Source: Oopsacas minuta
Taxonomy: Eukaryota > Animalia > Porifera
Reading direction: 5' to 3'
Assembly (NCBI GenBank): GCA_024704765.1
Contig: JAKMXF010000356.1
Location: 1-64,000, forward strand
Length of the DNA: 64,000 nt
Part shown: positions 1-64,000 of the stretch, one piece after another
Layout of the letters: every line of letters starts with the position of its first letter
How positions within the stretch are numbered: position 1 is the stretch's first letter
Notes under the pieces: generated by a model
What the model was told of the DNA's origin: nothing
Seen by the model: the letters and a program-made list of their open reading frames with translations, nothing else
The model's database searches: none
Translations under genes and position numbers: made by a program

Positions 1-331
1 GTACCTTCGGTAAAAAGACCTCAGATAGTTTAGAAATTAATCACTTTCAAAATATATGTTTTCCAGAGAAATCAGCCAAAAAAGTGAAAAATTTTAGTTA
101 TCTGAGATTTTCCCAGGAAAATTAAGTTGTTTGAATTCAAGGTTGAAACTTCTCCGACCGAATAGATAGTCGATCAGCCAAATATATTCAGTCAACCGAA
201 TACCGAATACTGATACTCGGCAGCAGCCAATATTGGACTATTCAGTTGCAACATTGCCTGAAGTGCATTGCTAAAAGTATCTTTTGTGACAGTATAATCT
301 GAATTCATTAGTAGTAAACATAGTTTGTTAC

Positions 332-3200: not shown

Positions 3201-3326
3201 CAGGGACGGTGCCAGGATTTCAAACCGAGGACAAAATCTTATTATATAATTGGCAGTGGTGGTCTGAGGATCTGTCAGACCCGGGGCAAATGCCCCGTTT
3301 TTCCTCTCCTCCTGGCACTGCCACTG
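3201..3326. mobile_element. hAT-like MITE
   Basis: Imperfect terminal inverted repeats cagggacggtgccagg / cctggcactgccactg; flanks gctattcg / gctatacc resemble a decayed 8-bp TSD. Confidence 0.4.
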
Positions 3327-4199
3327 GCTATACCCCTAAAGTATACTATCAGATCCCAATTTTAAAGCTAGTAAAATATGTCAACACGGGTATGGAATAA
3401 AGGAGAGATCTAATAGGAATATCCGCATCCCGAGCTAGTGCAAATAAAACCTTCCACAACATAGTTTTGATATTTTAAACACTATAATTCGATATAATCA
3501 TACTTGTGTTTGCGTTATATGTATTTATCCTTACAAACCAATATATAGAGGAGCTTCAGGGGTGGATATTATTCAAGGTAATATGAAATATTAATTAGCC
3601 ACGTATATCTGTTCATAGAGATATCCAAGTGAGCAAAGTCTAATTACCTTAACTCTTAAGACCAAACTCGATATGATTAATTCACTAATCATATCAGTAG
3701 TAATTATATATGTTCTAGCTTTCCAACAGCCAATTTGATGTAGCAATATTCGTAATATTTCTTAATTTCATGTAGCTAAATAGGGATGTGCTGAAGTAGG
3801 ACATTTGTCTGTCTATGATTAATCTAGCAGTCCAATAGGTGGTGGCGTTAAAATTGGAAAATATGGGAGAATTTGTTAAATTTTTCATTCCATTTTAGTG
3901 ATTTTCACGCCATTCAACTTTAATTCATAATTGTCGATAATATTCGCTCGCCATAATATGAGTATTCGTAATAGTAGCATAACTTTACAAAACACAGAAT
4001 AAATACATAATTCAGAGATCAGTAAGGTTGATACATTGTGTGAAGTTGTAGATAGACAGCGTGGGATGAAGAAATCGATAATTTTCTAAATTGATATCTT
4101 AACTCATATGATGTTGATTTCCACAATTCATACTTAGTTGCTAAAAGGATTTCTGTATTAATTGCCTTAGTTTGAATTTATGTATATGTTGTGGAGGAT

Positions 4200-42788: not shown

Positions 42789-43096
42789 TATTGGCTTGTT
42801 ATGTATTTTGGAAGTATTGTATGATTTGATTATAACAAATAAATATTGTGGCACACACTCTTGAAAAGCTTGCATGCACATCTGGCGGTGATTATCCTTG
42901 TATCCTGAAAGTTTCAACTTCTAATCTGTTATAGTTTTGGCTGTGGACAAAATACGGAGAAGAATATGGTAATATTCACTACATAACTATAATACTGTCT
43001 ACATAATACAGTATCAATTAGCACTGTTACACTACAGCTAAGACCTAGAATACTAAATATTTGTTAGATGATAGAGCGAGCAGTTTATAGTTAAAA

Positions 43097-45048
43097 TTAT
43101 GCCTTCTTTGTCCAGAATGTTATAGATTCATCCTCATGCTTGAAGTTGAATTCTATGTAATATTTTGTAAAGAAAGGAACACCAAATTGCCAGTTAAAAC
43201 TCATCTCTTCATCGTCAACAAATGAACTCCTACACTTATCCTCTTCTTTTTCGATATAAAACTTTGGTTCCAATGTCATCTTTGAATCACCAAACATTAT
43301 TACTACGGTTGGAAAAGTATCTATCTCATCACAGTCTACGTAACCTTCCTCATCAGCCTCTATAAACAAACAATAAGTAAAATATAAACAAACTGCAGCC
43401 AAAACATCGAATTCAGTCTATGCTGACATAGTTTTTACTATCTTAATCACAGTTATTTACTCTTAATGTTGTTTATTATGAAATATAGCCTCACAGTTAC
43501 TACAGACTGAGAATCTGTTCACTTTTCAGAACTCGTCCCGAAATCGAAACTGAAACTAATATCTAGAAATGTACGTTCCTTCTGAACCTGATCGGAATAG
43601 AATCCGAAACGAACCGAATCCTAAGTAATAAACAAACAAACATCAACTGAACTGTTTACAATGCAACTTACTTATTTTTGTGTGTATACTATCCACAAAC
43701 GCCTTCGTACCGTAGATTAATGCACAACCAGAATCTACGAGCACTACACACTTATCCATTCCTTCACCACAGTATACCTCGTCTCCCAATTTGAGACTTG
43801 TCATTTTGACTTTAGTTTCGACATTTGATATCATCTTAGTTTTTATTCCACTGTCGGCTTCCAAAAGGTCAGCATTATGACCTCCGAAGGTTATTTCGCC
43901 TCCGTCTACTGCTGTCTTTCCACCTTTCAGATATAATGAATAGCTTGGTGCATCTATTAGTTCTTTTTCAACCATGTTGTAGAATACAGAAGGATGATTA
44001 TCAGTGGTTTCCATGTTTAAACCTGAGAGATAAATTGTAATAGAAATAAAGTACAGAGTTCTTACAGGTATTTATGCTAATAGCTAATAACAATTTCAAA
44101 GAAAAGGTGATAAATGTGTCGCTCTATCAGATTTGTGGGTTTACACCACATGTGTAATTGATTATCTATTGGCTTAATTGTTTGTATTTATTCTTAACAC
44201 CTATCTGAGACTGTAAATTGATTGGCATTGGAATATTTACAATACCAAACATTCGTATGAAGTAAATATATTTCATACGAAAGCTGGCGAACTACTTTTT
44301 GCTTTGCTTCCACCAGCTCGGCATACATACGAAATAACTGAATCAATGATTAATTAAGAATTCATAACTCACCCATCATCCCATCGAATCCTTCATACTT
44401 CCCTCTAACATATCCTGCTGCCCCGAACAGCTGATCTTCTATAGAAAGTTTGTCTGATAGATGCACTACATCTGTCATCTCAAAACCTAGTGCATTTCCA
44501 TCACCATAAGTGATTTCAAAGTCTTCGTAATCTTTTTCCTCGTCAAATTTGTATTTATTATGTCCAATACAAAACCGATCGCGATCAAGGCAATTCTCTC
44601 CAAATACCCACAACAGGTCTGATCCTGTGTCTATCATCACCTATTTACATGTCTAATCAAATGTAATATATAGACTCTCTACCATATGATATCTAATCAA
44701 AATGTAATATATAGACTCTCTTCCCTATGATATCTAATCAAAATATCATATATAGACTCTCTACCATATGACACTCACTTTAAATGGCTGTTTTGCTTCG
44801 CCGATTTGTATATTCATTACATAAGCCATTCCGTTATCTGCATTTTCAATCGAAATACTGTGAACCTCAGATAGTGTCACTTCGCATTTGCTTTGATTAG
44901 ACATCAATTGACAGTTTTTATCTCTGGGATGGATCACATCGAAATTCACAGAGAATGTTTTGGTATTCTCTTCCACTCCTGCTTTAGAGACCACGTGTCC
45001 CAGAGATGACGTCACAATGAAACAGAGCAAACACACACGAGAATACAT
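43097..45048 (-). CDS. Secreted pepsin-family (A1) aspartic protease AP1
   Basis: Exons 44779-45048, 44373-44640, 43672-44022, 43097-43359 (phases 0,1,1; 383 aa); DTGS / DSGC, flap YGDG, DGMMG. Confidence 0.93.
44653..44770. repeat. About 40-bp minisatellite x3 in AP1 intron 1
   Basis: tctaatcaaa(a)tgtaatatatagactctct.cc.tatgata repeated three times. Confidence 0.85.
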
Positions 45049-45609
45049 CTTGCTTGATATGATGAATATTTTCTTTGATTTTGTCACGTTTTATACATTT
45101 TCTTACCTCTGTCAGAACAATGAGTGTGAAGGTGTCATAATCGGGTGATGGTTACATTCATTGATTGTTAAGTCAGTTGGAAAATTGTTAAAGTGACAGC
45201 CAGTTTTAGAAATGATTTTTTGCTTGAATTCACATTAACAATAAATTCAAAATATTTGGTGAAATGATAAACTATCTACCATTTCTCAAAACCTTGAAGA
45301 TATATCCCCCATCATACAGTTCGGCACAAATGGTCAACCTAGTCAGGCCACTTAACACCCTCCTCGCCCTTGTATGAGTTGTATCATATCTATGATTTCA
45401 CCCTTGAGAGAGGATAATCAGTGATATCATTTAATTACAATACTATCAGTAAATACACTACATAACTATAATACTATCAGTAAATACACTACATAACTAT
45501 AATACTGCCTACATAATACATATCAATTAGCACTGTTACACTACAGCTAGAACCTACAATACTGAATTGTTATTTGTTAGATGATAGAGCGAGCAGTTTG
45601 TAGCTGGAA

Positions 45610-47193
45610 TTATTTCTTTTCCCAGAATACGATGTGTTCCATTTTGGGTGTAAAGTTAAACTCTATATAGAACTTATAAAAGAATGGGGTTCCAAATTGC
45701 CAATCGAATGCTTTAGTTGGATTCTCGAATACTAATGTATAGCATTTACCATTCCCATATATGGCAGTATAATACTCAGATTCCAAAGTCATTCTTTGTT
45801 TACCAAACATTATTTCGATAGTTGGGGCTGCACTTATCTTCTTGCAATCAATTTCATTATCTTTCTCACGTTCTATAATAACAACAATAAAACAAACAAA
45901 TTAATAAATAGATTCTTATATTTGTCATTACCTAGAATTTTGTCGATTATGCTCACAAATTCCGCAGGTGCGAATATTTGAGAACCTCCGCTATCCACGT
46001 TAACACTACATGTTTGTATTTTGTCGCTACAGAAGACCTCTTTCCCAAGACTCAGACTTGTCATGTGTGTAAATGTTCTACCAAGTTTATCTATCATTGG
46101 AGCACTTACTCCTGTCTTATCTACAAACAGTTTTGGATGACGACCTCCGAATGTTATCATTCCTCCATCCTTTGAACTCTTTCCTCCTTTCAAATTCATT
46201 GCGAATATTGGTTCCTTGAGTAGTTTCTGATGAATCATGTTGTAGAATACTGAAGTGTGACCGTCTGAAGTGTCCATGTTTAGTCCTGAATGAATGGAGT
46301 AAAGAAGTAACAATTCGTCTTTACAGACCTGTAGCTGTAAATTACAACACATATACAGAGGAGCAGGAATATTAATGGTGTGATGGATTTGTATTTAGAA
46401 ATTCAAAAATGGAATCTCCAAAGTTTAAAGGAATTCATCAAATCTATTTATGGCGTGTATAAAATATATTTGGATTATGATTGGATCCATTCGGCCCCTC
46501 TGTACCTATGATGTATATTGTCACTTCTATGAGGGAAACGATAAATGTGTTTATGTGTTAATTCACTCGACTTACCCATCACTCCATCAATATCGTCAAT
46601 ATCAAATTTAAGAATCGCAGCAGCACCAAATGTTTGTTTCTTTATGGAAATATATTTTGTTACATGAACATCATCTATAACTTCAAAGCCTGCAACACCT
46701 CCACTACCATATACTAATTTGAATTGCTTGTATTTGTCTAGATTCTTTTTGTCGATAATGTATTGATTATGTTTCTCACAATCCTTCCCCATGTCACTAC
46801 ACACCCATAGCACATTCGATCCTGTGTCCAACTGCACCTACAAAATCGAAGATAGAAAATGAATCGACTTAAAAGTACAAGACATTTGTATTACCTCAGA
46901 TTTAAAATCCCCATCAAATAACTTACCCTGAATGTATCTTTACCGATATATATAATAGTTATATATTTCATCCCATGGTCTATGTTTGCTAACTGAGCAC
47001 TGTCTACAGTCCCAGATAATTCCACTCCACAGTTACTTGTATTACCCATCAGTTCACAGTTTCTATCTCTGGGATTGATTACATCGAAATTCAAAGAGAA
47101 TATTTTGTCTTTCTTCTCCACTCCTGGTTTGGAGGCTACGTATCCCAGAGATAACGTCACAATGATACAGAGTAAACACACACGAGTATACAT
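45610..47193 (-). CDS. Aspartic protease AP2
   Basis: Exons 46927-47193, 46576-46837, 45932-46285, 45610-45872; DTGS / DSGG, flap YGSG. Confidence 0.93.
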
Positions 47194-47230
47194 ATTTTAA
47201 GATAGGTTAGATCTACGAATTCTTTTCTCG

Positions 47231-47238
47231 TATTTATA
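47231..47238 (-). promoter_or_regulatory. TATA box of AP2 (representative)
   Basis: TATAAATA on the sense strand about 40-45 bp upstream of the ATG; the same box precedes AP3 and AP9; TATAAAA at a similar distance precedes AP1, AP4, AP5 (55205-55211) and AP8; AP6 has GATAAATA. Confidence 0.6.
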
Positions 47239-47633
47239 TATTCACTGGAAAAATAGATTTGTGAGTGTTATGATCGGACTTTGAATCCATTGATGTAATG
47301 AAAGACAATCAAAAAAGTGATAATCTGAAGATATTTTTGATTTTTCAAGAAATTCTCGCATCTTTTGTAAACAATTCATCCATTTATGTGTTTTAGAATT
47401 CAAAAAGTACTGATTTGACGTCTCCGTATTTCCATTTACAGTTTACATTCGGAGAGATATCTCGCTTTTGAACTATTGTATAAACAATGAAGCAAGTTCT
47501 ATAAGGGTAGAGTATCTAATTGTTCAAAGAATAGTGCCGGTGAATACACAAATCTCCATCCAAAGCATAAATAGTTAATTGAGAAAATAATTTCTCAAGA
47601 TAATGATTTAAACGTAAGGCCACTGTTAGTTGG

Positions 47634-47953
47634 AAACATGTTTCAGCTCCACCGCCCGCATCTGATTTGGCTACCGCGCTAATATCGTTATTATAGTAAT
47701 TATTGTATTATTTCACCATTTACTCAAAGTTCTTAACTACAAGTTGTATAAACTGGCTAGAGTACAATAAAATACTTTTTTCATAATCTAGCATATTCTC
47801 ATATCAAATTTGACTTTAGTAATTATAATATTTTATGAATCAAGGCAATAACCAATTTTCCAGCTGATAGGTCACAAAATAATGAGATAATGATAATGAA
47901 ACGCCCGCCGCATGAATGTCCATCTGGATCTAATGTGGAGCTGAAACAAGTTT
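47634..47953. mobile_element. MITE, TIR family AAACTTGTTTCAGCTCCAC, different internal sequence
   Basis: aaacatgtttcagctccac / gtggagctgaaacaagttt. Confidence 0.75.
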
Positions 47954-48468
47954 CTCATTAACAGTGACCTAAGCAGCAAGTCATAATTCCATAAATTTGC
48001 AGGTTCGGATAGGGCAAATTAGCTCAAGGCTACAAGTCACACAATTACTATTAGGCTATGCTGACTATACTATATACAGAAGACTCCGCATAGAGTTAAT
48101 CTGGCCCAGAAACAGAACACATACAAACAGTATTATATTACTCAGCTTAATCGGGCCAAAATGCTCTAGTCGCGATGTGACCTGAGTCTACTGTACATGT
48201 ATAGTAGCTCAGTATTCCCTCCATTACACTAAAATGTACATTATCGTGTCAGTATGGAACAATTTCCAAATTGTGTTTGATACTACGTTTATGCTATCGA
48301 ATAGTAATGAGTAGATAGGTTTAATGAATATTCTATCAGTAAATACACTACATAACTATAATACTGTCTACATAATACATATCAATTAGCACTGTTACAC
48401 TACAGCTAGAACCTACAATACTGAATTGTTATTTGTTAGATGATAGAGCAAGCTGTTTGTAGTTAGAA

Positions 48469-50370
48469 TTATGGCTTTTCCCAGAATGTCATTTCTTCGC
48501 GATTATCAGTAAAGTCGAATTGTGTGTAATATTTGTGAAAGAATGGAAGCCCGAATGCCCAATGAGACAATTTGGAAGGATTGGCATAAATTAAGCTATA
48601 GCATTTTCTTTTCGACATATAGGTGTAAAGTTGTGGTTCCAAAGACATCATTTGCTTGCCAAACATTATTTCTATCACTGGAAATTTATTTATACTTTTG
48701 CAGTTGACCTGATTATCCCTTTTAGCTCCTATACATATCAAACAAACAAATAAACACACATACAAATCTAGTGAATTCTGGTGTTATAATACTTCGGTTG
48801 TGATAAATTGTGTTTGATTGATACAAAAATTGGTACCAGATTGAATCTAGATTTGGACATCAGTTATTAAAATGGAAAGTTTTCAGCCTGCTGTAAAAAT
48901 TTCCACAAAAATAGGTTTATTTCTTTGAAACTTACGAAGTACTTTATCCATGAAATCGGCAAAATCAGCTGGTCCTAATATATACGAAGCTCCAGAATCG
49001 ATTAATACTGTACACTCATCTCTTTTCTTGCCACAGAATACATGTTTACCCACATTTAGACCCGTCATTTGAGTAATTGTTTTACCCCCTCTTGCCATTC
49101 TTACACTAATTCCATGGCCTCCCTTAATAAGTTTATCATTATGGCCTCCAAATGTTATCTCTCCTCCCTTCTTTGATGTCGTCCCTCCTATTAAATTCAT
49201 TGAATATACCGGCTCTTTAATCAGTTTATTATATATCATACTGTAGATGACGGATGGCCAGCCTGACTTGGTATTTGTATTTAGACCTAAAGGAAATATT
49301 GAATGTTATTATGAGATATAGCTCAGCTGTAGTATAGTACAGGTTTTTGTAATACAAAACCCAATACCCTCATTCGAAATGTGACTTTCATTTATCCGAA
49401 AAAATGACCTTTCCTCGAAGATACAAAGATTAGATTGTAGCCTGAATTATTGTGTTTCAAAAGGAAAAGCGCTGACTAAACAAAATGTCTTTCACTATTA
49501 ATTATTAAAATTCAAATGGTTACCTATCACTCCATCATACCATGCGAAATCCATAGTTGTGTCGCTAGCCGCACCAAACAGCTGTTTCTCTATGATAATA
49601 TCCTTTGTTAATTGAACTGTATCTTCAACTTTCGAAATTATAACTGCCCCGCTTGCATAGCCAATTTTGAAATCTTTATACTTAATCTTTTTGTCCAGTT
49701 TGTATTTAGTATGTCCACTGCATTTCTTATTTTCGTCTGAGCAATTATCTCCGAATACCCACAATATTTCTGATCCAGTATCCAATTGTACCTAAGATAT
49801 ATATCAGCAATTGATAGATGGAAACACGATCTCTAGGCCTCTGACTGGATCGGAGAGGCCAGAACCGTTTTACTATCTTCTCGAAAATGAGTACTTATTA
49901 CCCAAATATTGTGACATCTGATTATTCGATGAAATATATATTTCTAGAGGCCCTTGGAGCGCGAGGTTCAGGCAAAATGGCCCTCCTGCACCCTATCCCA
50001 GACGGCTGGATGGAAATAAATATGAAATCTGGCAGTGCGGAAAAAAATAATCAGTCAAGTTTGGCGATTTGAATAGTTCGAAAGTAATAATCTACCAATA
50101 ACTCACTTTGAAGGTTTGTTTGTCGATTCCAATTTCCATTATAGACATCAATCCGCCTTGGAAATTTTGAACGTTGGCGCTGTTTCCATTAGAAAGTTCC
50201 ACTTCACACCTGCTTACATTTTTAGATATTTCACAGTCTATGTCTCTTGGATGGATTACTTCTAAAGGCACAGAGAATATTTTGTCATTCTCTTCTACTC
50301 CTGGTTTGGAGGCTACGTATCCCAGAGATAACGTCACAATGATACAGAGTAAACACACACGAGAATACAT
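48469..50370 (-). CDS. Aspartic protease AP3
   Basis: Exons 50107-50370, 49524-49791, 48936-49286, 48469-48728; DTGS / DSGA, flap YASG. Confidence 0.93.
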
Positions 50371-50727
50371 ATTTTAAGATAGGTTAGATCTACGAATTCT
50401 TTTCTCGTATTTATATATTCACTGGAAAAATGGATTTGTGAGTGTTATGATCGGACTTTGAATCCATTGATGTAATGAAAGACAATCAAAAAAGTGATAA
50501 TCTGAAGATATTTTTGAATTTTGGTGAAAATTCTCGCATCTTTTGTAAACAATTCATCCATTTATGTGTTTTAGAATTCAAAAAGTGTTTATTTGGCGTT
50601 TCTACAAATTCTATTCTCGTATTTCTACACATTTATAGATCTGTATTCAACCTATATTGTACCTCTCTGTGGAATATTTCACAAGATAATACTTACATCA
50701 CTTGATTCATTTATATATTTTCTTTTG

Positions 50728-51095
50728 GATATCTTATACATTTGGTTTGTGGTCAGTGAAATGTATTTCAAAACAATACAACTATGCTTTAAGGAAGTAG
50801 AAGACAAGATATACGTACATTATGTGCTCAATTCTCCATCCAACCCATACACAATTCTCGAAATATTTCAACATAAACAGTCTGAGATAATTCCCTAGAT
50901 ATGAAGCTAAGAAGCAAAAGTTTGTCTGCTTATATTGAATTGTAATGAATATACAGTTTTAATGAATATTCTATCAGCAAATACACTACATAACTATAAT
51001 ACTGTCTACATAATACATATCAATTAGCACTGTTACACTACAGCTAGAACCTACAATACTGAATTGTTAGTTGTTAGATGAGAGAGCGAGCAGTT
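50728..51095. repeat. Duplicated spacer (partner 59468-59835)
   Basis: Near-identical from gatatcttataca through the 3' UTR block. Confidence 0.9.
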
Positions 51096-51136
51096 TGTAG
51101 CGAAGAATATTTTGCTTCTTAGAAAGTTACGAGCTA

Positions 51137-52725
51137 TTAGGGTCTGACATTACTCTTTTGATAGAAAGTGATTAATTCATCGCCCAAATTAAATTCTGTA
51201 TAGTATTTAGCTAGAAGTGAATCTCCAAATTGCCAAACCACTGAACTTCCTTCCCTAATTCCACTATAACAAATAGCAACACCTTCACTATCAGTATCTG
51301 AATATGTGTAATATTTGGATTCTAGAGTTAACGGTTTATTATCTATCGTAATCACTATATCAGGAAAATTTGGAATATCTTTACATATTACTCTGTAATG
51401 CAGACCTTTCTCAGTAGTAGCTACAAATCCAAAATATTTAATCACACATTTTTGACATAAAATTTCGAATTTTTGTAATAAACTCACCTAAATGGTCTTT
51501 ATTGAATTTAGCTACAACAGCTTCCGGTCCGTAAATAAGGCTGCATCCTGTATCAATAAGTGCATGACAACTGGCGTCTCCTTCTTTACAGACCTCAACA
51601 CCTCCCAAATCCATTTTTTGCATTCCGATTGTCATAGTACCCTTTCCAACAATTTTTGCAGATATTCCTGTTTTTTCTTTCAAAAGAAGTTTGTTAATGC
51701 CTCCAAAGGTAATCTCGCCAACTCTACCTTCTGCCTGGACGAAAATTCCAAAAATTGGTTTTTTAATCTGTTTTTGTTGGAAGGCATTAATGAATACGGG
51801 GAACTCGTCTTTATTTCTTCCTACTTTTCTCATGTCTAGACCTAAGAAATTCATGCAAATAAATTACAGAAATGCTCTATTCTTTTATTTACTAAAACGT
51901 TTGATGCTATTTTCACACCTTCACATAATTCAATTACAGTGGAAACTCCACAAACGGGCCCTGTGAAAATGAGGTCCTATCTGCACCCCTGACACCTCGT
52001 TTGTGCGGTTCGACTGTTAATTAAGTTAACTTGCCTAGAATTCCATCATACGGAACCTTTTGCTTAATGTAATCGACAGCTCCGAAGATTTGTGCGTGTA
52101 CCACTATTTGGGGTGTCAGATGAATTGTGTCTCTTATTGTCAATCCAGTGACTCTATTACTCTCATAAACAACAGAGAATTCGTTATCAATTATCTTCTT
52201 CTTTTCTGGTACGAATTTGTTGTGACCTTCACAGTTTTTATTCTTTTTACTATCGCAACTTTCACCGAACACCCAGAAGTCATTCGAACCAGTATCCACT
52301 GCAACCTATTTATTAGTTTGTACATGATTTACTGATTAAAGACCCCGCTTAACAGGATCACTGGCTAGAAACAGAACCATACAATAGCTCCAAGTAATCT
52401 AGTCAAAGTGACATAGCACGAAGTGACCCTGTTAATCGGAATGACACGCTATACTTACCCAAAATTCTAGTTTGTCGATACCAATTTCTACACTCATCAT
52501 GTAGATGAAGTCATCATGATTCTTCAATACAACACTAAATGGGTCAGAAAGCTCTGTCTCACATAGATGATGTGTATAGTTCATTTGCTTATACAATTCA
52601 CAGTTTTTCCATGGGCGAAATACATGTAATTTTGCTGAGAATATTTGATCATTCTCTTCCACTACTGCTTTGGAGGCCACGTATCCTAACGTCACAATGA
52701 AGAGTAAGCACACACTAGAATACAT
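51137..52725 (-). CDS. Aspartic protease AP4 (most divergent copy; GC-AG intron 2)
   Basis: Exons 52459-52725, 52035-52305, 51488-51841, 51137-51420; DTGS / DTGC, flap YESN, WQFGDSL. Confidence 0.9.
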
Positions 52726-52989
52726 CTTGAAAATGTAAATATATATATTTACTCCAATGATAACTGTAGCTCTACAATTCTCTCATATTTATACACTTTA
52801 CTGCAACAATTGATATGTAAGTGTATTGATTGCTTGTTGAATCCATTGATGACTGCAATTAGATATTTTTTATTATGAATGCAACCGACCTTTTGATAGA
52901 AGACAATTCACAAGGTCTAGCACCTTTGAATTCATCTAACCATTAAAATGACATTTTCTTTGAAAAATGTAGAGTTTGTGTAGCAATTA

Positions 52990-53115
52990 CAATACTATCA
53001 GTAAATACACTACATAACTATAATACTGTCTACATAATACATATCAATTAGCACCGTAGCACTACAGCTAGAACCTACAATACTGAATTGTTAGTTGTTA
53101 GATGATAGAGCGAGC
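52990..53115 (-). repeat. Orphan copy of the conserved AP 3' UTR block
   Basis: Block present, but no protease exon 4 is recognisable in 53115-53480. Confidence 0.75.
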
Positions 53116-53768
53116 TGTTAGAAGTTCTAATCTGTGTTGGACGATTCTACATTTCTTTTGAGCGGGGTTTTCGAAATTTTTGCATCAATTCACATTTACA
53201 ATAAATATTCTATTCTAACTATAGAAAATCAGTAATCCAAATTGTCTTTGTTATATTTTGTATATTGTAAATCCTCACTACTCTATACTCCATGGTATCA
53301 AACAAAGCGTGCTTACTGCGTATATATTCTGTACACACACCGCTGTTTATTCCAATCTCACCGATTCTTTACTTTTCACTCTATATCAGTTTGAATATCT
53401 CTTAAAAATATGGAATTCCCCTTGAGAAAGTTGAAGCAACCAATAAACATTATGTTAATAGCTATAATTATATAAATCCTCAAGATGTCATGAAGGGTCC
53501 TTTTGGCGGACACAGTGTTCGCAAGCCGAAGAGCACAAGCAAGCAAAGCGACTTTGCTTTCATTAATTCATATACAAATCTTGTTCCAACTATTCCTATA
53601 ATCAAATCCCTTCTGTTATTTAATGAACATACTATCTGCAAATACACTACATAACTATAATACTGCCTACATAATACAGTATCAATTAGCACTGTTACAC
53701 TACAGCTAAGACCTAGAATACTAAATTGTTAGTTGTTAGAAGAGACAGCGAGCAGTTTGTAGCGAGGA

Positions 53769-55161
53769 TTATTTCTTTGTCCAAAAACAAATATGTTCAT
53801 CTTTATCTGTAAAGTCGAATTCAATGTAATACTTAATAAATATTGGAACTCCAAACAACCAGTCATATTCATCTTCATCAGTTTCTACAAATAGACTATA
53901 GCACACCTCTCCATTCACTTCAATATAATACTTGGGTTCTAACGTCAGCGGTGATTCACCAAACATTATTTCGATAGTTGGGAAAGTATCGATCTTCTTG
54001 CAATCAACAAAATCATCTTTATCAGCGTCTATAGATAGAAAACAAACAAATAAACAAACATCAGCTGGATATATGTAAGGCAATACAAAATGTAATTACT
54101 TATGTCTGTGTTTAGTTTCGTTACAAATGCTAACGGTGCGGACATTTCTGTACAGCCTGAATCTATTATCACTCTACATTCATCTTTGTCAGGGCTACAG
54201 TAAAAGTCTTTCCCTAACTTAAGACTTGTCATTTTTGCCATTACTTCATCACCAGGTAGCATTTTTGTCATCACTCCGCTATCTGGAACTACCAGATCTT
54301 CATTGCGGCCTCCGAATGTTATCTCTCCTCCATCTTCCGAAGACTTTCCCCCTTTCAGATAAAGCGCATAAGCAGGTTCAGTGATTAGTTTCTGTGCAAT
54401 CATTTTGTAGATTACAGAAGGGTGTCCATCTGAAATATCCATGTTCAGACCTGAATAGATATATTCAAATTGTTTTGCCAGTTATAATTGGAATTTAGTG
54501 ATTCAAATCAACAACTCACCCATTATTCCATCATAGCCCTCATACTTCTGTCCAACCTTACCAGCTGCACCAAACAGCATATCCTTTATTCCAATTTTGT
54601 CTGTTACATGAACAACATCTGTGACTTCTTTTCCTGATGTCTCCGTACTTTCATATTCAATTGAGAAATCTTCATATTCCTTATCCTTTTCTAGTACGTA
54701 CTTAGGATGTCCTTTACAATAATCGCTTTCTCCATCCAAACAATTACTTCCAAATACCCACAAAAGATCTGATCCTGTGTCTAAAACCACCTAAACATTT
54801 AGCATCTTACAGTAGAATTCGTATAAGACGTAGCCCCTACATTTTATCTGAGTTCTACAGTTCGTACAAATTATGATAGATAACTCACTTTAAATGCTTG
54901 TTTAGCTTCACCGATTTTAATTGTCATTACATACGACATTCCATCTTCCATGTTTGCAACGGTTACACTGTCTACAACCCCAGATAAGTCTACTTCACAT
55001 TTGCTTAAGTTAGACATCAATTTACAGTTCCTATCTCGAGGATTTATTACATCTAAACTTACAGAGAATATTTTCTTATTCTCTTTCACTCCTGGTCTGG
55101 AGGCTACGTATCCCAAAGATATCGTCACAATGATACAGAGTAAACACACACGAGAATACAT
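53769..55161 (-). CDS. Aspartic protease AP5
   Basis: Exons 54889-55161, 54520-54790, 54100-54450, 53769-54028; DTGS / DSGC, flap YEST. Confidence 0.93.
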
Positions 55162-55744
55162 CTTGATAGATAAAGTGAATATGTCTTATAATCTATTCTC
55201 ATGTTTTTATACATTTTTCTTACCTCTGTGAGAACAATGAGTGTGAAGGTGGTTATTTGGGTGTTGAGTCCTTTCATATAGTGTAAAGTCAGTTAGAAAT
55301 ATTCTAATCTGTATTCAACCGTTTTCCATTTCTTTTTGAGCTGATATTTTCTAATGTGCTTGAATTAACATATACATTCCAAACTATTGAAATTCAGTCA
55401 TTCAATTACTCAGATCTTCTTTTGTTGTACTTTTGCGAATTATTGCGTCAAAATATTTGGAATTTGAAAACTTTTCACCATCCGCTTCGCATACCCACGG
55501 CAATTCTGTTTCCAATTCGTAACCATTCTTTTGTGTCGGAACAGAGGAATTCCTGTACACTCTACAAAGTAACAATATAGGACCAGAGGGAGTCACATGA
55601 CAGAATATTCTGCTTCAAAGTAATAGACTATTATTATAGCATTTAATGAATATTCTATCAGCAAATACACTACATAACTATAATACTGTCTACATAATAC
55701 ATATCAATTAGCACTGTTACACTACAGCTAGAACCTACAATACT
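55162..55744. repeat. Duplicated intergenic spacer AP5/AP6 (partner 61821-62404)
   Basis: About 5 differences over about 580 bp by eye. Confidence 0.95.
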
Positions 55745-55775
55745 GAATTGTTATTTGTTAGAAGATAGAGCGAGC
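55640..55775 (-). terminator. Conserved AP 3' UTR block ending in ATTAAA poly(A) signal (representative)
   Basis: Sense strand ...tctaacaaataacaattcagtattgtaggttctagctgtagtgtaacagtgctaattgatatgtattatgtagacagtattatagttatgtagtgtatttgctgatagaatattcATTAAA. Block copies near 42985, 45440, 48335, 50965, 52990, 53630, 55650, 58800, 59710, 62310; the ATTAAA end is seen in only some copies. Confidence 0.7.
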
Positions 55776-55783
55776 TGTTAAAA

Positions 55784-58257
55784 TTATACTTTATTGTAGA
55801 AGATAATTGCTTCCTTCTTAGGCGTAAAGTCGAATTCAATGTAGTATTTGTAGAAGAATGAAACTCCAAAAATAAAGTCTGCTGAACCCTCTCCTAACGG
55901 ATTGAGGACGATTGTTGAGTAACACTCTTTTTCTATCAGAATAATATAATATTCAGGTTCCAAAGTAATCCTCTGTTTACCAAACAATATTTCAATAGTT
56001 GGAGCGATACTTCTTGATTCACACGCGACCATATTTTCATCATCAGGATCTAAATAGAATTACAAGAACAATCAAACAAACATGTATAAATCCTGAATCA
56101 CTAGAACAGTATAATTTCGCAGTTTAGAAATCCCACAGCTTGCCTAGGTTTGAATCTATGAATTTCTATACTTGAGATTTGTACATAAGATCAGCTGAAT
56201 TAAACTATTTTTGAACGAAATGGTAGGTGTACAGGCTACCCATCAAATTGGCGCACTTAATTCATTTCGTTATTGTCCACTGTTATAATTATGGCTAATC
56301 AGAGCACCCTTGAAACTTTGAAGTAGCAACATAAGTTCTTAGAAGCGAAACCAACTGTAACAACTTCCTATTCCAATTGTAGCATGTACGTGTTATTCTA
56401 GTTCAACTTACGAATGATAGCGTTTATTACATCCACAAATGCTTTAGGTGAGTAAACTGCAGGTGCCCCTGAATCAACTTCTACCATGCATGGGCCCATT
56501 CCTTTAATACAGAACTCATCTTTGTTGATGCTAATACTTGTCATCTTGATTATAGTTTGACCACCTGGTAACATATCCACCCCAACAGCGCTTTTGGGCA
56601 CTATGACTTTATCCATGCGACCGCCAAATGTGATCTCTCCTCCAACCTTCTTATTTGGTCCTGCTTCCAGATAAAGTGAATACACTGGGCGCGTAATAAG
56701 TTTCTGTTCAATCATGAAGTAGATTGCTGAAGGTTGATTATATTCTATATTCATGTTTAAACCTATACACAGGATATATAGATGATGTTATATTCTTACC
56801 AGAGTTTCACCCCGCGGCTTAAATATCCGCAGTTAGGAGTGAACCTATGCAACTAAATACGATAGATGCGGAAAATTATCGTAAATATACAAAAATCTCT
56901 CTCTCTCTATAAGAAATACACTGAAGAGCAAACAGTACTTAACTTACCAATTACACCATCGTTACCATCTTGTGCTTCAGAAAGGTCATCAGCTGCTCCA
57001 AACTGCATGTCATGTACAGTAATTAAATCTGTTATATGAACTTCATCATGTACTAAATCACCTTCTACATACTCATCAGCATAGTCTATTCTGAAGCTTT
57101 TATATTTCTGTTTTTTATCTACAACGTATTTTGGATGTCCCGCACAATTTTTATTTTTACCATCCAAGCACTTATCTCCGAATATCCAAAGTAGATCAGA
57201 TCCTGTGTCTAACTGCACCTAAGTACACATAATTATTGTAAATTGTTAAGTTTTTTTGTCCAAGTTGATTAATGAATTCTTTGATACAAGTGTAAAAATC
57301 TCAATCATCGTCTGTGCAGACTTGAAATTACCAAATTACTTTTCGTGGATTATTGGAATAATATTATTCTACTAAATATCTATTTTGGCAAAGAAAGATG
57401 AAATTGAATTTTAATAATCTTATTAGACATTTACAAATGGTAGAATCGAATTCTACGTCCCTGTTTACCCCTATTTAACAAGTGGAAGCTAATCTCTAGG
57501 ATAATTTTGAAATGTTCACCAAAAGGTGTGATAATATGATTAATCATATGATAAATCAGTGTATATCTATACATTTAATAGAATGTATTGAGCAATAGAA
57601 TTGCAGTCAACAATTAATACAAATACATTACAGTTCTAATTATAATACAAACACTCCACCAGAACTAATTCAATGCATTTATGCCTAATTGTAAAACCTT
57701 AAAATCTGATTGGGCTAAAATACAGAGGTGTCAAAAGGTGTGAAAATATACACATTAGAAATTTTTCAAATGTCAGGTCGACAACTAAATGTCAATACGA
57801 GTACACATGTCAAATTTGGTGTCTTAATCACAAAAGGTGTGAACAGCAGAGCGATAACATTTGTGCTGATTTTAAATTGGTATGTTTTGTGGCATTCTTA
57901 AGTTTCGGAATTAAGCTATATTAACCGAATACAGTAAATATATCTACAGAATTGTTCTAGGAATACCTTACATGCAATTCTAATGTAACTCACATTGAAT
58001 ATTTGTTTGGCTATTACTACTTGCATCAAATATACCAGTCCATGACGTATTCTTTGAGCTGGAGCATCATCAACAGTCTCTAAGTCAACTTCACACTTGC
58101 TTTGATTAGACATCAATTTACAGTTCCAATCTCGGGGATGGATTACTTCTAAAGGCACAGAGAATTGTTTGTCATTCTCTTCTACTCCTGACTTGGAGGC
58201 TACGTATCCCAGAGATAACGTCACAATGATACAGAGTAAACACATACGAGAATACAT
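55784..58257 (-). CDS. Aspartic protease AP6
   Basis: Exons 57994-58257, 56948-57218, 56412-56762, 55784-56049; DTGS / DSGA, flap YADE. Confidence 0.93.
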
Positions 58258-58938
58258 CTTATTGAATTCTTTTTTTCTACTTCTGAGTGATAGTTACACA
58301 AATTTTTCCTCGTATTTATCACCCATCTGAAGAATAGATTTGAAAGTGTTTTGATTAGAGGTTTGAGTCTATTGATACAATGAATAGACAATTTGAAAAG
58401 TGGTCTCTTGAATAGAAATTTTCATTTTTGCAGGAAAATTCTCGCATCTTTAGATCATATTTGAACCATTTATGTGATTTTTGTAATTCTAAAACTTTGA
58501 TTTAGCGTCTCTTTATTATATTCCACAATTCTATTCAAATAGAAATCTCGCTTCTAATCTATTACTTAAACTAGATCTTGAGCGTAGAATTTAATTGTTA
58601 AAGAAAAAGTGCCGGTGAACACATGATTCTCTATTCATCTCATAGATAATTCACCGAGAATGAATATATCACACAAGGTGCTTGTAGTATCCCTGTCTAT
58701 TTATCGGGGCAGCTATATTCTCATGTGTCTGCCTTATCTGTTTATTATTTCTATTAATCTCACTCTCATTCTGCTTCGGCATAATACTATATAATTCATT
58801 ACAATACTATCAGCAAATACACTACATAACTATAATACTGTCTACATAATACATATCAATTAGTACTGTTGCACTACAGCTAGAACCTACAATACTAAAT
58901 ATTTGTTAGATGATAGAGCGAGCAGTTGGTAGTTAGAA

Positions 58939-59468
58939 TTATTTCTTTGTCCAGAATGTTATAGATTCGTAATCACGCTTGAAGTAGAACTCTATGCAAT
59001 ACTTGATAAAGAATGGAATTCCAAACATCCAGTCAGTGCCTTCATGGTGATTTATATTAACAAGCCAACGGTACTTTCCTTTTCCTTCTACACGAATATA
59101 ATACTTAGGTTCTAAAGTGAGCTTTAATTTACCAAACATTATTTCAATAGTTGGGAAAGTATGGATCTTCTAGCAATCAACAATACCAAGTTCTTCAACA
59201 TCTATAGATAAAAAACAAACAAATAAACAAACATCAGATTAAGGTTAAACCAAATTCTAAAAGATATTTAATGAATTAGAATCCATTTTTGTAATCTTCA
59301 AAGTACACAGTAAATCGGGCCCACTCCATTCTGGTTCAGTGACCGATCTACTCTATATCAAATTCCGTGACAGTAAAAAACATCTCCTACTTTAAGACTT
59401 GTCATTATTGTCATATAATCTACTGTAATCACCATACCAACTTTAACTCCACTATCAACATCCACAAG
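58939..59468 (-). pseudogene. Aspartic protease remnant AP7
   Basis: Exon 4 (58939-59201) has an in-frame TAG (VDC*KIHTFP); only about 100 bp of exon 3 remains (59369-59468, LVDVDSGVKVGMVITVDYMTIMTSLKVGDVFYC); exons 1-2 and both catalytic Asp motifs are absent. Confidence 0.88.
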
Positions 59469-59847
59469 ATATCTTATACAGTTTGGTTTGTGGTCAGTGA
59501 AATGTATTTCAAAACAATACAACTATGCTTTAAGGAAGTAGAAGACAAGATATACGTACATTATGTGTTCAATTCTCCATCCAACCCCTATACAATTCTC
59601 GAATTATTTCAACACAAACAGTCTGAGATAATTCCCTAGATATGAAGCTAAGAACCAAAAGTTTGTCTGCTTATATTGAATAGTAATGAGTAAATAGGTT
59701 TAATGAATATTCTATCAGCAAATACACTACATAACTATAATACTGTCTACATAATACATATCAATTAGCACTGTTACACTACAGCTAGAACCTACAATAC
59801 TAAATTGTTAGTTGTTAGAAGAGAAAGCGAGCAGTTTGTAGCGAGGA

Positions 59848-61820
59848 TTATTTCTTTGTCCAGAAGTACAGATGTTCATCTTTATCTGTAAAGTCGAATT
59901 CAATGCAATACTTGATAAAAAATGGAATTCCAAATAACCAGTCAATGCCTCTATCGGGATTTTTACCAACACCACATTGGCACGTTTCTCCCATTACAAT
60001 GATATAATATTTGGATTCTAAAGTGATCTTTGATTCACCAAACATTATTTCAATAGTTGGGAACTCAGGGATATTCTTGCAATCAACAATCCCATGTGCA
60101 TCAGCATCTATAGATAGAAAACAAACATCAGATTAGGTTAAACCAAATTCTAAAAGATATTTAATGAATTAGAATCCATTTTTGTATCTTCAAAGTATAT
60201 AGTAAATTGGAACCACTCCATTCTGGTCCAGTGACCGATCTACTCTATATCAAATTCGATAGTTTGGCCCTAGCAAGCGAAGCGTACTTGTATTTATATT
60301 GACATTACAAATATTTGCTTACTTATCTCTTTGAGTAAATCATCTACAAATTCTTTCGGTCCATAGATAGATGCAGATCCTGAATCTACTAATATTTTAC
60401 ATTTGTGTATATCCTCACTACAGTAAAAAACATCTCCTACTTTAAGACTTGTCATTTCTGTCATATAATGTTCCTTAAGTTGAATACCAACTTTAACTCC
60501 GCTGTCTGCCTCCACAAGAGCCTCATTGTGACCTCCAAAAGTTATATCTCCTCCATCCATAGCAGTCTTTGCCTCTTTTACACACAGTGAATAGGCTGGT
60601 TCCGTAATTAGATTCTGTGCTATCATGTTATATATTACAGAAGGTTGATTGTGTTTTGTATCCATATTCAAACCTGAAGATTGTATTGGAATTATTTCCA
60701 ATCATGGTAATATTCATTGTGTACATTTTGAATGTATTCGTAATATGAGGGATACATTCAATTGGTCATATCGTGCATTTGTGGGAAATAATGTTCATAT
60801 ACACTTTCACCCCTGATTAATCACATATTGACACCTTTTTGACAAATTTCAAATTTAAGCTTAAGGATTACTTTCAACGGTTACATTGGAGTAAGAAAGT
60901 ATTCTGAATCCTGGTTCTATTGTTGTTTATGATTATAAAGAAAACAAATTGAGATATCTAAATATGAACTATTGAGTAGAATGTAATTTGAAGGAATTCA
61001 GATCGACAACTAACCCATTACACCATCAGCATATCTAAAGTTCAAAGTAGTGTCATCAGCAGCACCAAACAGCTGTGCTTTTACTGCAATTAAGTCTGTT
61101 ACATGAACATCAACACATGTTACCTCTTTACCTGTTATACGCCCCCCACCTGAATATCCAAGTTTGAAAGGCCTGTATAGCGGAGCTTTGTCAAGAACGA
61201 ACTTAGCATGTCCCTTACAATTGTCGTTTTTATCATCCAAGCACTCATTACTAAATACCCACAGGAGATCTGATCCTGAATCTAGCACAACCTAAGATAG
61301 CGTATTTAGATCTTTTTAGCTTAGAATCGAAGGAACAATTATAGTTACACAAAAGTTGGATAAAACAAATATATTATTTGGTAATATTACAACTCTAATT
61401 TATAAACTGAAAAATATTGTTAAATAATCCATTATTTCCATAAACTTGCAACTTCCCGCTCCTCCAATACACCCCTGCATATAAGCTATCTCTGGATAGA
61501 GCAAGCTATTGACTTACTGCAGTTACTGAAATAAATATATAACTCACTCTGAATGGTTGTTTAGCTGCACCGATTTCAATAATCATTACCAGCCGCAGTC
61601 CATTATTTACAGCTGGCACAGAAAGACTCTCTTTAACCGCAGATAGGTCTACTTCACATTGGCTTTGATTAGACATAAATTTACAGTTCCAATCTCGAGG
61701 ATTTATTACATCTAAACTAACAGAAAATATTTTCTTATTCTCTTCTACTCCTGGTTTGGAGGCTACGTATCCCAGAGATATCGTCACAATGATACAGAGT
61801 AAACACACACGAGAATACAT
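59848..61820 (-). CDS. Aspartic protease AP8
   Basis: Exons 61548-61820, 61015-61291, 60323-60673, 59848-60107; DSGS / DSGS, flap YSGG. Confidence 0.93.
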
Positions 61821-62404
61821 CTTGATAGATAAAGTGAATATGTGTTATACTCTATTCTCACGTTTTTATACATTTTTCTTACCTCTGTGAGAACAATGAG
61901 TGTGAAGGTGGTTATTTGGGTGTTGAGTCCTTTCATATAGTGTAAAGTCAGTTAGAAATATTCTAATCTGTATTCAACCGTTTTCCATTTCTTTTTGAGC
62001 TGATATTTTCTAATGTGCTTGAATTAACATATACATTCCAAACTATTGAAATTCAGTCATTCAATTACTCAGATCTTCTTTTGTTGTACTTTTGCGAATT
62101 ATTGCGTCAAAATATTTGGAATTTGAAAACTTTTCACCATCCCGCTTCGCATACCCACGGCAATTCTGTTTCCAATTCGTAACCATTCTTTTGTGTCGGA
62201 ACAGAGGAATTCCTGTACACTCTACAAAGTAACAATATAGGACCAGAGGGAGTCACATGACAGAATATTCTGCTTCAAAGTAATAGACTATTATTATAGC
62301 ATTTAATGAATATTCTATCAGCAAATACACTACATAACTATAATACTGTCTACATAATACATATCAATTAGCACTGTTGCACTACAGCTAGAACCTACAA
62401 TACT
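61821..62404. repeat. Duplicated intergenic spacer AP8/AP9 (partner 55162-55744)
   Basis: About 99% identical to 55162-55744 by eye. Confidence 0.95.
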
Positions 62405-62430
62405 AGCAACTAGAGCCGAGTAATTATTCC

Positions 62431-63908
62431 TTATAGCTTAGCATAGAAACAGATTGCTTCGTTCTTGGCTTTAAAGTCGAACTGAACATAATACTTCACA
62501 AACAGTGGTACACCGAATGACCAATCGAAGTCCTCGCCAAAATCATTTAACTTGATGGTTGAGAAACACTCCCTGTCATCTTCTTGGATGTAATATTTAG
62601 CTTCCAAAGTAATCAAATGTTTACCAAACATTATTTCAATAGCAGGAGTGGATTCTCTTGTCTTGCAGTCCACTAAACCATCATCACCAGGTTCTATAGG
62701 AATATAATTGAGTGCATAAATCTCAAATATACTCTCTCTCTCTCTCTCTCTCTATTTAATTATGAATCAACATTTCTTGGATGAATAGTGTAAACATATT
62801 GTTATACTCAAAATAGTAAAGTACCAACTTACTCAGAATGGAATTTATTTTATCCAGAAAATTTTTTTGGACATGCATATCAGCATTTCCTGTATCAAGG
62901 AGTGCTATGCATTTATTTATATCTTTGCCACAGAAGAATTCTTCTCCTAACTTAAGACTGGTCATTTTTGTTCTAGTTTTTCCACCAGCTATCATTTTTG
63001 CCTTAACCCCATCTATTTTAAGATTTACAAGCTTTTCATTGTGACCTCCGAATGTAATCTCTCCTCCGTCTACTGCGGTTGCTCCCCCTTTCAAATAAAT
63101 TGAATAGGATGGTTCCTTAATTAGTTTCTGTTTAATCATATAATAGATTATTGACGGTTCTCCATCACCCAGATACATGTTGAGACCTATATTCATGTAA
63201 ACAAGCTAACATTATTCACTAATTAACCGTGTTAGAGCCTCACTTTTGATAGGTTAAGACATTTTGACAGGTTTCGACACAAACCTGACTTAATTGACTT
63301 ACCCATTATTCCATCGTAACCCTCATACTCATCATTAACTTCACCAGCTGCACCAAACATCACATCTTTGACTATAAGTTTTGTTGCCAAATGAATTTCG
63401 TCTGCTACTTTAACACCAGATACTTCTCCATCCGCATACCCTATTTTGAATATTTTATACTCCTTGTCTTCTTCCAGTTCGTATTTAGCATGTCCCTCAC
63501 AATTTTCATCTTCTTCATCCAAGCACTCATCACTAAATACCCATAAGATGTCAGCTCCTGTATCTAAGAGAACCTAAGTGTGTATATATATTGTAAATCA
63601 CGAGACTATATTCTATACTACAAACTTTAACTCACTTTGAATGCTTGTTGTTTTTTACCTATTTTTATCGTTATAATGTATCTCATAGCATCATCCAAAT
63701 TGTTTACAAGTGCAGCATCCATAATCCCAGATAGCTTAACTTCACATTTGCTTTGATTAGACATCAATTTGCAGAATCTATCTCGCGGATGTATTACATC
63801 AAAATTTACAGAAAATATTCTGTCATTTTCTTCCGCTCCTGGTTTGGAGGCTACGTATCCCAGAGATAACGTCACAATGATACAGAGCAAGCACACACGA
63901 GAATACAT
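62431..63908 (-). CDS. Aspartic protease AP9
   Basis: Exons 63636-63908, 63303-63573, 62833-63186, 62431-62693; DTGA / DTGN, flap YADG. Confidence 0.92.
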
Positions 63909-64000
63909 ATTTTAAGATAGGTTAGATCTACGAATTCTTTTCTCGTATTTATATATTCACTGGAAAAATAGATTTGTGAGTGTTATGATCGGACTTTGAA

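Follow-up and report, generated by a model that had tools for sequence, protein, structure and literature searches.

Lineage-specific expansions of the A1 (pepsin) family of aspartic proteases are well known. The pregnancy-associated glycoproteins (PAGs) of ruminants, which have the nine-exon vertebrate gene structure, change rapidly around the substrate cleft, and many of them have lost catalytic residues and are thought to be binding proteins; among digestive members of the family, fly aspartic proteases lack the proline loop that is present in the lysosomal type. Glass sponges are syncytial, gutless filter feeders, and to our knowledge the molecular basis of their food breakdown and microbe handling is almost unknown. 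Here we analyse a window of 64,000 nucleotides (C356:1-64000 of a 61.5-Mb assembly) from the glass sponge Oopsacas minuta (Hexactinellida), which carries a tandem array of pepsin-like genes. These genes probably represent a sponge-restricted, strongly derived subfamily of A1 zymogens, that is, a diversified protease battery whose units share cassettes homogenised by gene conversion. The 61-Mb genome of this species was published in 2023 (PMC10280926).

On the map of open reading frames (ORFs), minus-strand ORFs between 43000 and 64000 recur as sets of four, which resolve into eight complete gene models, A to H (43097-63908, minus strand), placed head-to-tail with four exons each and intron phases 0/1/1 (Table 1). 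They encode predicted zymogens of 380-391 amino acids (aa) of the pepsin family (A1, Pfam PF00026) with no internal stop. The landmarks come from a base-by-base reading of gene D (ATG at 55161; donor GTGAGT after codon 91, phase 0; donors of exons 2 and 3 both in phase 1) and were applied to all other copies; introns of the array models measure 59-775 nt, and the splice sites of A-H are all GT-AG except for a GC-AG pair at intron 2 of gene E. Eight spliced models (A, B, D, E, F, G, H and the dispersed copy K) match deposited GenBank proteins residue for residue. The initial annotation of this DNA, which had reported eight frame-intact four-exon genes with phases 0, 1, 1 and both catalytic Asp motifs in every gene, is borne out by these models: D[TS]G motifs, one per lobe, are found in exons 2 and 3 of all eight window genes as well as in J, K and L. 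The strong diversification that it claimed is equally apparent, with pairwise protein identities of 36-60% between window genes and of just 36-40% between gene E and the remaining ones. It had also rightly suspected that the array continues past the window, since it runs 5 kb beyond the edge into pseudogene I and then intact gene J, both inverted; the full tandem array comprises ten gene units, nine of them intact (A-H, pseudogene I, gene J).

Profile and structure comparisons place the products in the A1 family. A genome-wide PF00026 scan matches every array gene; genes B and E, scanned exon by exon, exceed the cut-off of 19.9 bits on exons 2 and 3 and on exons 2, 3 and 4, respectively, and the full-length deposited proteins match both PF00026 and PF14543. 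Profiles of exon 2 and exon 3 match solved phytepsin, cathepsins D and E, cardosin, renin, pepsin and proteinase A (E 1e-8 to 1e-14). The AlphaFold2 model of gene D predicts a bilobal pepsin fold (mean predicted local distance difference test score (pLDDT) 82.5; predicted template-modelling score (pTM) 0.82), with a Foldseek probability of 1.00 against pepsin, chymosin, cathepsin D and renin. Its best structural matches are S. mansoni cathepsin D1, chymosin, pepsin, tick cathepsin D and yeast proteinase A, and template-modelling scores, normalised by the target's length, lie between 0.76 and 0.86 for the top eight. The equivalents of Tyr75 and Trp39 and six disulfide cysteines (three pairs) are invariant in the family alignment, at canonical positions, and the Ser35 equivalent is present in all intact copies but gene A (DTGA). 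The array thus resembles the PAGs as a large, lineage-specific tandem A1 expansion but shows no loss of the catalytic site of the PAG or Bla g 2 type: each intact sponge copy keeps both D[TS]G motifs, including both Asp residues and the Gly that follows, and Tyr75.

Each protein begins with a hydrophobic leader. The sequence MYSRVCLLCIIVTLSLGYVAS is encoded exactly or with 1-5 substitutions in seven window genes, and the first 21 residues are almost invariant across the window proteins; gene E is more diverged, so the near-invariant signal peptide of the initial annotation holds for the other seven. As judged from sequence only, the leader has a plausible cleavage site between VAS and K, and about 45 residues precede the mature N-terminal strand. 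This putative pro-segment of ~45 aa carries a conserved Cys pair and an N-glycosylation sequon at residue 51, which is the sole conserved N-glycan sequon of the family, none being conserved in the mature part. In the gene D model a pro-segment strand is predicted at residues 31-39, though pLDDT is <50 for residues 44-73.

The mature part departs from the A1 consensus in several places. The IGTPPQ motif reads IGEAKQ, the tip after Tyr75 is hypervariable, the loop aligned with the S1/S3 loop has a three-residue deletion, and the Tyr189-Trp190 pair is lost. The positions of pepsin Thr218 and Asp303/304 are changed in nearly all members (the Thr218-aligned residue is Cys, Ser, Ala, Asn or Gly); in renin, as in mutants of chymosin, the pH optimum is higher when Thr218 and Asp303/304 are lost. 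W-I-L-G-D has become W-x-F-G-[V/I/L/T], with the Asp retained by gene E alone, an acidic, proline-free stretch stands in place of the proline loop, and the isoelectric point (pI) of the mature part ranges from 4.4 to 9.0 across paralogues.

Among described enzymes, the invertebrate 'gut' cathepsin D-like proteases (tick IrCD1, S. mansoni cathepsin D1, housefly digestive cathepsin D) come nearest: they share the A1 fold, signal peptide and pro-segment predicted for the sponge family, S. mansoni CD1 and the tick IrCD zymogen are best structural matches of the gene D model, and the lysosomal proline loop is absent from the sponge family as it is from the fly digestive enzymes. The sponge proteins are, however, only 20-27% identical to them and form their own clade, with four exons, a Cys-pair pro-segment, no Tyr189/Trp190 equivalents, changed Thr218 and Asp303/304 positions and homogenised array flanks. 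The sponge's own canonical cathepsin D (C297:126379-127323, a 392-aa ORF) belongs to the same Pfam family and has the same catalytic machinery; this intronless copy reaches E = 2.7e-102 to PF00026, against about 1e-21 at best for single exons or exon pairs of the array, and it groups with the A1 proteins of other organisms, the array genes not being its orthologues. Nor do the array genes qualify as orthologues of lysosomal cathepsin D in general, given their separate clade, the missing proline loop, the altered WILGD and the absence of conserved mature sequons. The GenBank labels 'cathepsin D' and 'lysosomal aspartic protease' are therefore misleading; gene K (KAI6652356.1) is deposited as 'Gut cathepsin D-like aspartic protease [Oopsacas minuta]'. 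Elsewhere in the genome we also observe a 510-aa BACE-like protein with a C-terminal membrane anchor (C22:186858-187949) and a small cluster of canonical multi-exon A1 genes (C111:464966-468313 and 359226-359519).

A full scan of 1.84 billion representatives with a hidden Markov model of exon 3 ranks the sponge's own paralogues first, then exon-sized ORFs of ENA assemblies, then generic A1 proteins, and in word searches with the complete K and E proteins no full-length relative from beyond O. minuta exceeds 33% identity. Genes of the family are present in the ENA assemblies ERZ25072740, ERZ25071281, ERZ25072730 and ERZ26869290; ENA contigs of 265 kb to 1.8 Mb (GC 33-38%) carry genes with the same four-exon layout and, on two of them, tandem arrays, and exon 1 of these genes encodes a homologous leader and Cys-pair pro-segment, e.g. 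MNSRVSLLAIIVALCLGHVVC... and MYYSKVFLQSIIVLLSLGYVVSKAGVEG.... In a maximum-likelihood tree, the A1 phylogeny that the initial annotation had called for, the array family is monophyletic (100/100) and stands apart from canonical A1 proteins, the sponge's own cathepsin D included. Genes A-D, F-H and J-L form a 100/99 clade with one ERZ26869290 gene, and gene E groups with genes of other assemblies, which places the origin of the family before O. minuta and implies separate expansion in each species. The lineage-specific character proposed at the outset is accordingly kept in one respect, as a derived clade with no full-length relative found outside O. minuta at that level, and given up in another, for the family is not confined to this species.

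Synteny points in the same direction. An intronless gene at 36049-37185 (minus strand), which encodes a coiled coil and a CAP-Gly domain, adjoins the window array; across its whole length it is 42% identical to an orthologue, and to a paralogue it is 34% identical, both of which lie beside an A1 array on an ENA contig (L009), so the locus is syntenic between species. Two curiosities of the ENA material may be recorded here. The 4.7-kb contig L011 of ERZ26869290 is a near-palindrome in which intact main-clade A1 exons 2-4 face a broken mirror copy, the product either of misassembly or of an inverted duplication such as D and J show; in L012:8227-8562 (ERZ25072730, a single family member), exon 1 has a run of 11 Asn directly after the conserved 'SGVEN' start of the pro-segment.

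The flanks of the genes contrast with these diverging enzyme bodies. Among the eight array genes other than E, mean nucleotide identity is 95% in the signal-peptide codons, 72% in the rest of exon 1 and 64-66% in exons 2-4, and synonymous divergence (dS) between most array genes amounts to 0-0.13 over the 21 signal-peptide codons, vs about 1 in the rest of the gene. The high-identity tracts extend from within exon 1 across the whole upstream spacer and into the 3' untranslated region (3'UTR) of the neighbouring gene. Around the promoters of D and B, 54876-55744 and 61535-62404 are 94.6% identical, all of exon 1 included, with a 480-bp core at 99%; exons 2-4 of the same two genes are 70-80% identical. 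For the second spacer type, which A, F and G have in common, 50243-51051 matches 63781-64591 at 95.6% over 811 bp and 47053-47421 matches 50230-50599 at 93%, and the 80 nt upstream of the ATG are the same in the three genes but for one base in F. The promoters fall into an A/F/G type, a B/D/H type and that of gene C, gene E having its own upstream sequence. A TATA-like box lies 47-68 nt upstream of the ATG in seven of the eight window genes, as the initial annotation had supposed for all of them; the boxless gene C has none within 120 nt.

The 3'UTR module is 90-99% identical among the array copies, divergent gene E included, and 82-89% identical in the dispersed K and L. Genome-wide it is found only beside family genes (14 on C356, namely 13 full-size copies and one 46-bp piece, two on C299 and one on C365), and we reject on this ground the view that the spacer and 3'UTR modules are a transposon. 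A nucleotide comparison found neither module in the arrays of other species, which likewise leads us to reject cross-species constraint on them; nucleotide matches between species are limited to the opening 100-113 nt of the coding region (68-69% identical). The L009 array displays the same pattern in its own right, with exon-1 starts 95-97% and gene bodies 84-90% identical. Since the leader is uniform at synonymous sites and continuous with spacers of 90-99% identity, selection on the targeting peptide alone would not suffice, and local gene conversion between neighbours likely accounts for the identity of the flanks, dispersed K and L being less homogenised; since a related leader occurs in other species, this conversion would act on top of a real constraint on the leader. 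The reading of the conserved leader as an effector-type signature, suggested initially, is therefore right as to constraint and too simple in that synonymous sites are homogenised too. Conotoxin and snake-venom families likewise combine a leader and flanks far more conserved than the mature region with accelerated duplicates; the likeness, read from the genes alone, is one of evolutionary pattern only, the sponge products being enzymes of about 320 aa vs small toxins.

Gene death is visible at the same locus. Besides pseudogene I, relic X between B and C has lost exons 1-2; its 58942-59208 is 56% identical to exon 4 of gene D (tblastn), and it adjoins a copy of the F-type spacer (59468-59853 vs 50728-51112, 96%). 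Dispersed intact copies are K on C299 and L on C365, and C299 also has two more broken copies. Genome-wide, the family thus has 11 intact genes and no fewer than four dead copies (pseudogenes or relics), in agreement with the birth-and-death evolution proposed initially. Two 3'UTR modules have no preceding gene, one in the window (Table 1) and one just past it (C356:64498-64591), and each was probably left behind by a lost gene or by conversion of a spacer cassette.

Rates of change were estimated with Goldman-Yang codon models in our own implementation (10 genes, 293 codons, the compressed exon 1 left out). Trees of exons 2, 3 and 4 agree on the pairs B+K, D+J and C+L, with no well-supported conflict, and the F+G pair is recovered in the exon 2 and exon 3 trees, not in that of exon 4. 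The ratio of nonsynonymous to synonymous rates (dN/dS, omega) is 0.36 under M0, and M1a assigns 52% of sites to 0.15 and 48% to 1. Adding a class of sites improves the fit: M2a places 2.8% of sites at 5.1 (vs M1a, twice the log-likelihood difference (2dlnL) 9.1, p 0.011), and M8 places 6.4% at 2.4 (vs M7 11.4, p 0.003; vs M8a 7.0, p 0.008). Posterior probabilities exceed 0.9 at gene D residues 172, 247, 337 and 379, and 6 of the 13 sites above 0.5 fall in loops aligned to the S1/S3 loop, the Tyr189 loop and the 289-297 loop. A branch model is preferred to a single ratio (p 5e-14), with a background omega of 0.24 and a marked asymmetry within each young pair: D at 0.44, K at 0.59 and C at 0.25 are the slow copies, and J at 2.1, B at 1.06 and L at 1.2 the fast ones. 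D and J differ in their exons by indels in multiples of three and in intron 2 by 2 nt; under random substitution at the observed level, the frame stays open in about 1% of trials (D-J, C-L). Uniformly low dN/dS, which would have spoken against diversification, is thus not what we find, with about half of the sites near 1 and young branches at 1.1-2.1. The comparison of M7 with M8 that the initial annotation had suggested favours M8, with the modest support of a home-made implementation, and positive selection on the enzyme bodies is suggestive, not decisive.

The genes are expressed. Four public runs, all from one sample, contain the stretch; three look like DNA and only one, X4, has spliced forms. 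A single 1141-nt X4 RNA contig spans gene E from exon 1 to exon 4 and lacks the introns, of 67, 193 and 153 nt, and X4 joints remove introns 1 (98 nt) and 2 (69 nt) of gene D and introns 2 (185 nt) and 3 (362 nt) of gene C. Every X4 intron joint covered in C, D and E agrees with the gene models, and genes of the family are thus transcribed and spliced as modelled, as shown for these three. We considered and rejected two further structures at gene D. An apparent deletion of the gene (joint 53744>55784, in all four runs) carries 20 inserted letters that match the start of the 3'UTR of paralogue L and hence is paralogue cross-mapping. As for an alternative 5' exon or trans-splicing at the gene D ATG, the 255-letter X4 loose end that suggested it matches the A/F/G-type 5' flank and is a graph join via the identical leader.

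Based on these observations, we propose a scheme in which each unit has two unlike halves. Local gene conversion would homogenise the spacer cassettes, each made of the 3'UTR of one gene, the next promoter and its signal-peptide codons, and keep them 90-99% identical while exons 2-4 diverge (about 65% nucleotide and 36-60% protein identity). After a recent duplication, one copy would remain constrained and the other would evolve at dN/dS of at least 1 with its reading frame and catalytic residues kept, pseudogenes and relics marking gene death. The intact catalytic residues, the leader and pro-segment, the lack of lysosomal-type features and the pI spread together suggest zymogens that enter the secretory pathway, which could activate themselves either outside the tissue or within an acidified compartment. 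The variable loops would give rise to diversified subsites, and the paralogues may act together as endopeptidases differing in subsite preference and surface charge (pI 4.4-9.0). Their most likely use would be the phagosomal or extracellular breakdown of bacteria and particles that the syncytial tissue takes up, overlapping with antimicrobial defence. A diversified set of digestive or defensive proteases is our best guess, digestion of captured particles being the simplest use in a bacterivorous, gutless, syncytial sponge. A related scheme, which we regard as quite unlikely, gives the cassettes a purpose of their own: conversion would keep expression, targeting and 3'UTR uniform and the members co-regulated, diversifying selection would act on the bodies, with changes at the positions of Thr218, Asp303/304 and Tyr189 that might move activity towards near-neutral pH, and the result would be a 'variable effector' system peculiar to glass sponges, an extracellular repertoire for digestion or immunity in a syncytial animal without a gut.

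Several points weigh against the protease battery as we propose it. Secretion, activity, pH optimum, substrate and expressing cell type all rest on inference; X4 shares both sample and study with the genome, and its contigs give no expression levels; and a glass-sponge-specific family is not proven. The long tree (about 10 substitutions per codon), the hard-to-align loops and gene conversion each inflate the site tests, whose p values of 0.003-0.01, from home-made code, are modest. The omega of branch J is not significantly above 1 (2dlnL 2.6), and much of the divergence is therefore just as well explained by relaxed constraint. This last point leads to an account that we consider unlikely, a mostly neutral birth and death in which redundant digestive or lysosomal proteases drift under relaxed constraint, many becoming pseudogenes, and form no arsenal. 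It would accommodate the 48% or so of sites that fit an omega near 1, the fast branches not significantly above 1, the dead copies, of which there are at least four, and site tests that are modestly significant and prone here to false positives. It does not readily explain, however, why nine array genes at a dS of about 1 keep their frames, splice sites, both catalytic triads, Tyr75 and disulfide cysteines, when even the youngest pairs would be stop-free by chance in about 1% of cases; the background omega of 0.24, the transcription of at least three genes and the retention of an array at the syntenic locus in another species also speak against it.

The function of the enzymes can be weighed on similar grounds. 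That the enzymes are defence effectors, secreted against microbes, symbionts or fouling organisms and caught in an arms race, e.g. against microbial protease inhibitors or variable surface proteins, seems to us very unlikely as a separate explanation. The pairing of a constant leader with a variable body would suit it, as would the accelerated copies, the diversified charge (pI 4.4-9.0) and the replaced Thr218 and Asp303/304 equivalents, if the higher pH optimum known from mutants favours extracellular action; however, the pH argument is carried over from mutagenesis of distant enzymes, neither induction, an inhibitor partner nor secretion is on record, and digestion is not easily told from defence in a filter feeder that lives on bacteria. 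Most improbable of all is a role in matrix or biosilica processing, possible but unsupported, in which the proteases would cut skeletal-matrix proteins such as pro-glassin in an acidic silica-deposition compartment. Aspartic proteases do act at acid pH, and the family is apparently limited to a few sponge assemblies with glass-sponge-like synteny. The Aphrocallistes genome paper, moreover, postulates a processing enzyme, in that pro-glassin must be cleaved by an unknown protease, but cathepsin L is favoured there (PMC10282587); searchable silica-proteome or expression studies mention no aspartic protease, and ten diversifying paralogues exceed the need of a processing role. We therefore retain, as the probable reading, the diversified battery of zymogens with conversion-homogenised cassettes.

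No aspartic protease is mentioned in the Oopsacas and Aphrocallistes genome papers, the Oopsacas supplements, the silica-proteome paper or the keyword-searchable literature. Three things are new here: a sponge subfamily with a sequence signature and gene structure of its own, the syntenic arrays that it forms, and enzyme bodies whose divergence contrasts sharply with the homogenised cassettes around them. The 'undescribed system' of the initial annotation is accordingly undescribed as an expansion; its genes were already annotated as cathepsin D-like in GenBank and the A1 family is known, so that what had gone undescribed is an expansion within a known enzyme family, no new kind of system. Transcribed, diversified pepsin-like zymogens at a syntenic locus provide concrete candidates for the feeding biology of glass sponges, and the locus offers a compact natural case in which concerted evolution (spacers, leader, 3'UTR) proceeds beside divergent, partly accelerated evolution (enzyme body) within 2-kb units.

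Table 1 Features of the protease array and its surroundings (window positions unless a contig is named).
Feature	Position	Strand	Details
Gene A (LOD99_9268), 386 aa	62431..63908	-	exons 63908-63636, 63573-63303, 63186-62833, 62693-62431; = P0169; motifs DTGA, DTGN
Gene B, 386 aa	59848..61820	-	exons 61820-61548, 61291-61015, 60673-60323, 60107-59848; = P0166; PF00026 on exons 2, 3
Gene C, 383 aa	55784..58257	-	exons 58257-57994, 57218-56948, 56762-56412, 56049-55784; spliced model, RNA contigs
Gene D, 384 aa	53769..55161	-	exons 55161-54889, 54790-54520, 54450-54100, 54028-53769; = P0165
Gene E, 391 aa, divergent	51137..52725	-	exons 52725-52459, 52305-52035, 51841-51488, 51420-51137; = P0002
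Gene F (LOD99_9263), 380 aa, basic mature part (pI about 9)	48469..50370	-	exons 50370-50107, 49791-49524, 49286-48936, 48728-48469; = P0170
Gene G, 381 aa	45610..47193	-	exons 47193-46927, 46837-46576, 46285-45932, 45872-45610; = P0171
Gene H (LOD99_9261), 383 aa, last gene of the array	43097..45048	-	exons 45048-44779, 44640-44373, 44022-43672, 43359-43097; = P0168
Pseudogene I	C356:65145-66919	+	TAA at last exon-1 codon; frameshift in first DTG; second motif DLG
Gene J, intact, resembles D	C356:67562-68977	inverted relative to A-H	spliced model
Relic X, between B and C	58939..59522	-	piece of mid exon 3 and exon 4; ORFs and tblastn
Spacer with gene D promoter	55162..55641	-	99% to 61821-62301 (upstream of B); 91% to upstream spacer of J
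Second spacer type, gene F promoter, common to A, F, G	50371..50957	-	tract matches
3'UTR module, gene C copy	55642..55779	-	about 138 bp right after the stop codon; ends at ATTAAA ~140 nt after the stop
Other 3'UTR module copies	42974-43085, 45471-45598, 48320-48457, 50958-51095, 53619-53757, 58804-58927, 59699-59836, 62302-62404		beside array genes
Orphan 3'UTR module	52992-53119		no gene in front
CAP-Gly orthologue/paralogue beside A1 array	L009:823-1953 and 2253-3365	+ and -	ENA contig

Beyond gene J, a tetraspanin gene and a torsin gene follow on C356. In the remainder of the window, two intronless genes at 11457-12686 (minus strand) and 32451-33656 (plus strand), of 409 and 401 aa, encode near-identical proteins with a coiled coil and NHL repeats and lie inverted about 20 kb apart; a third, different NHL gene is found at 25483-26928. 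At the window start, the ORFs at 1093-1404 and 192-650 (both minus strand) carry a C-type-lectin-like motif (of the WIGFND...WNDxxC type) and an immunoglobulin-like stretch, and probably belong, as exons, to a single protein that is either secreted or membrane-bound.

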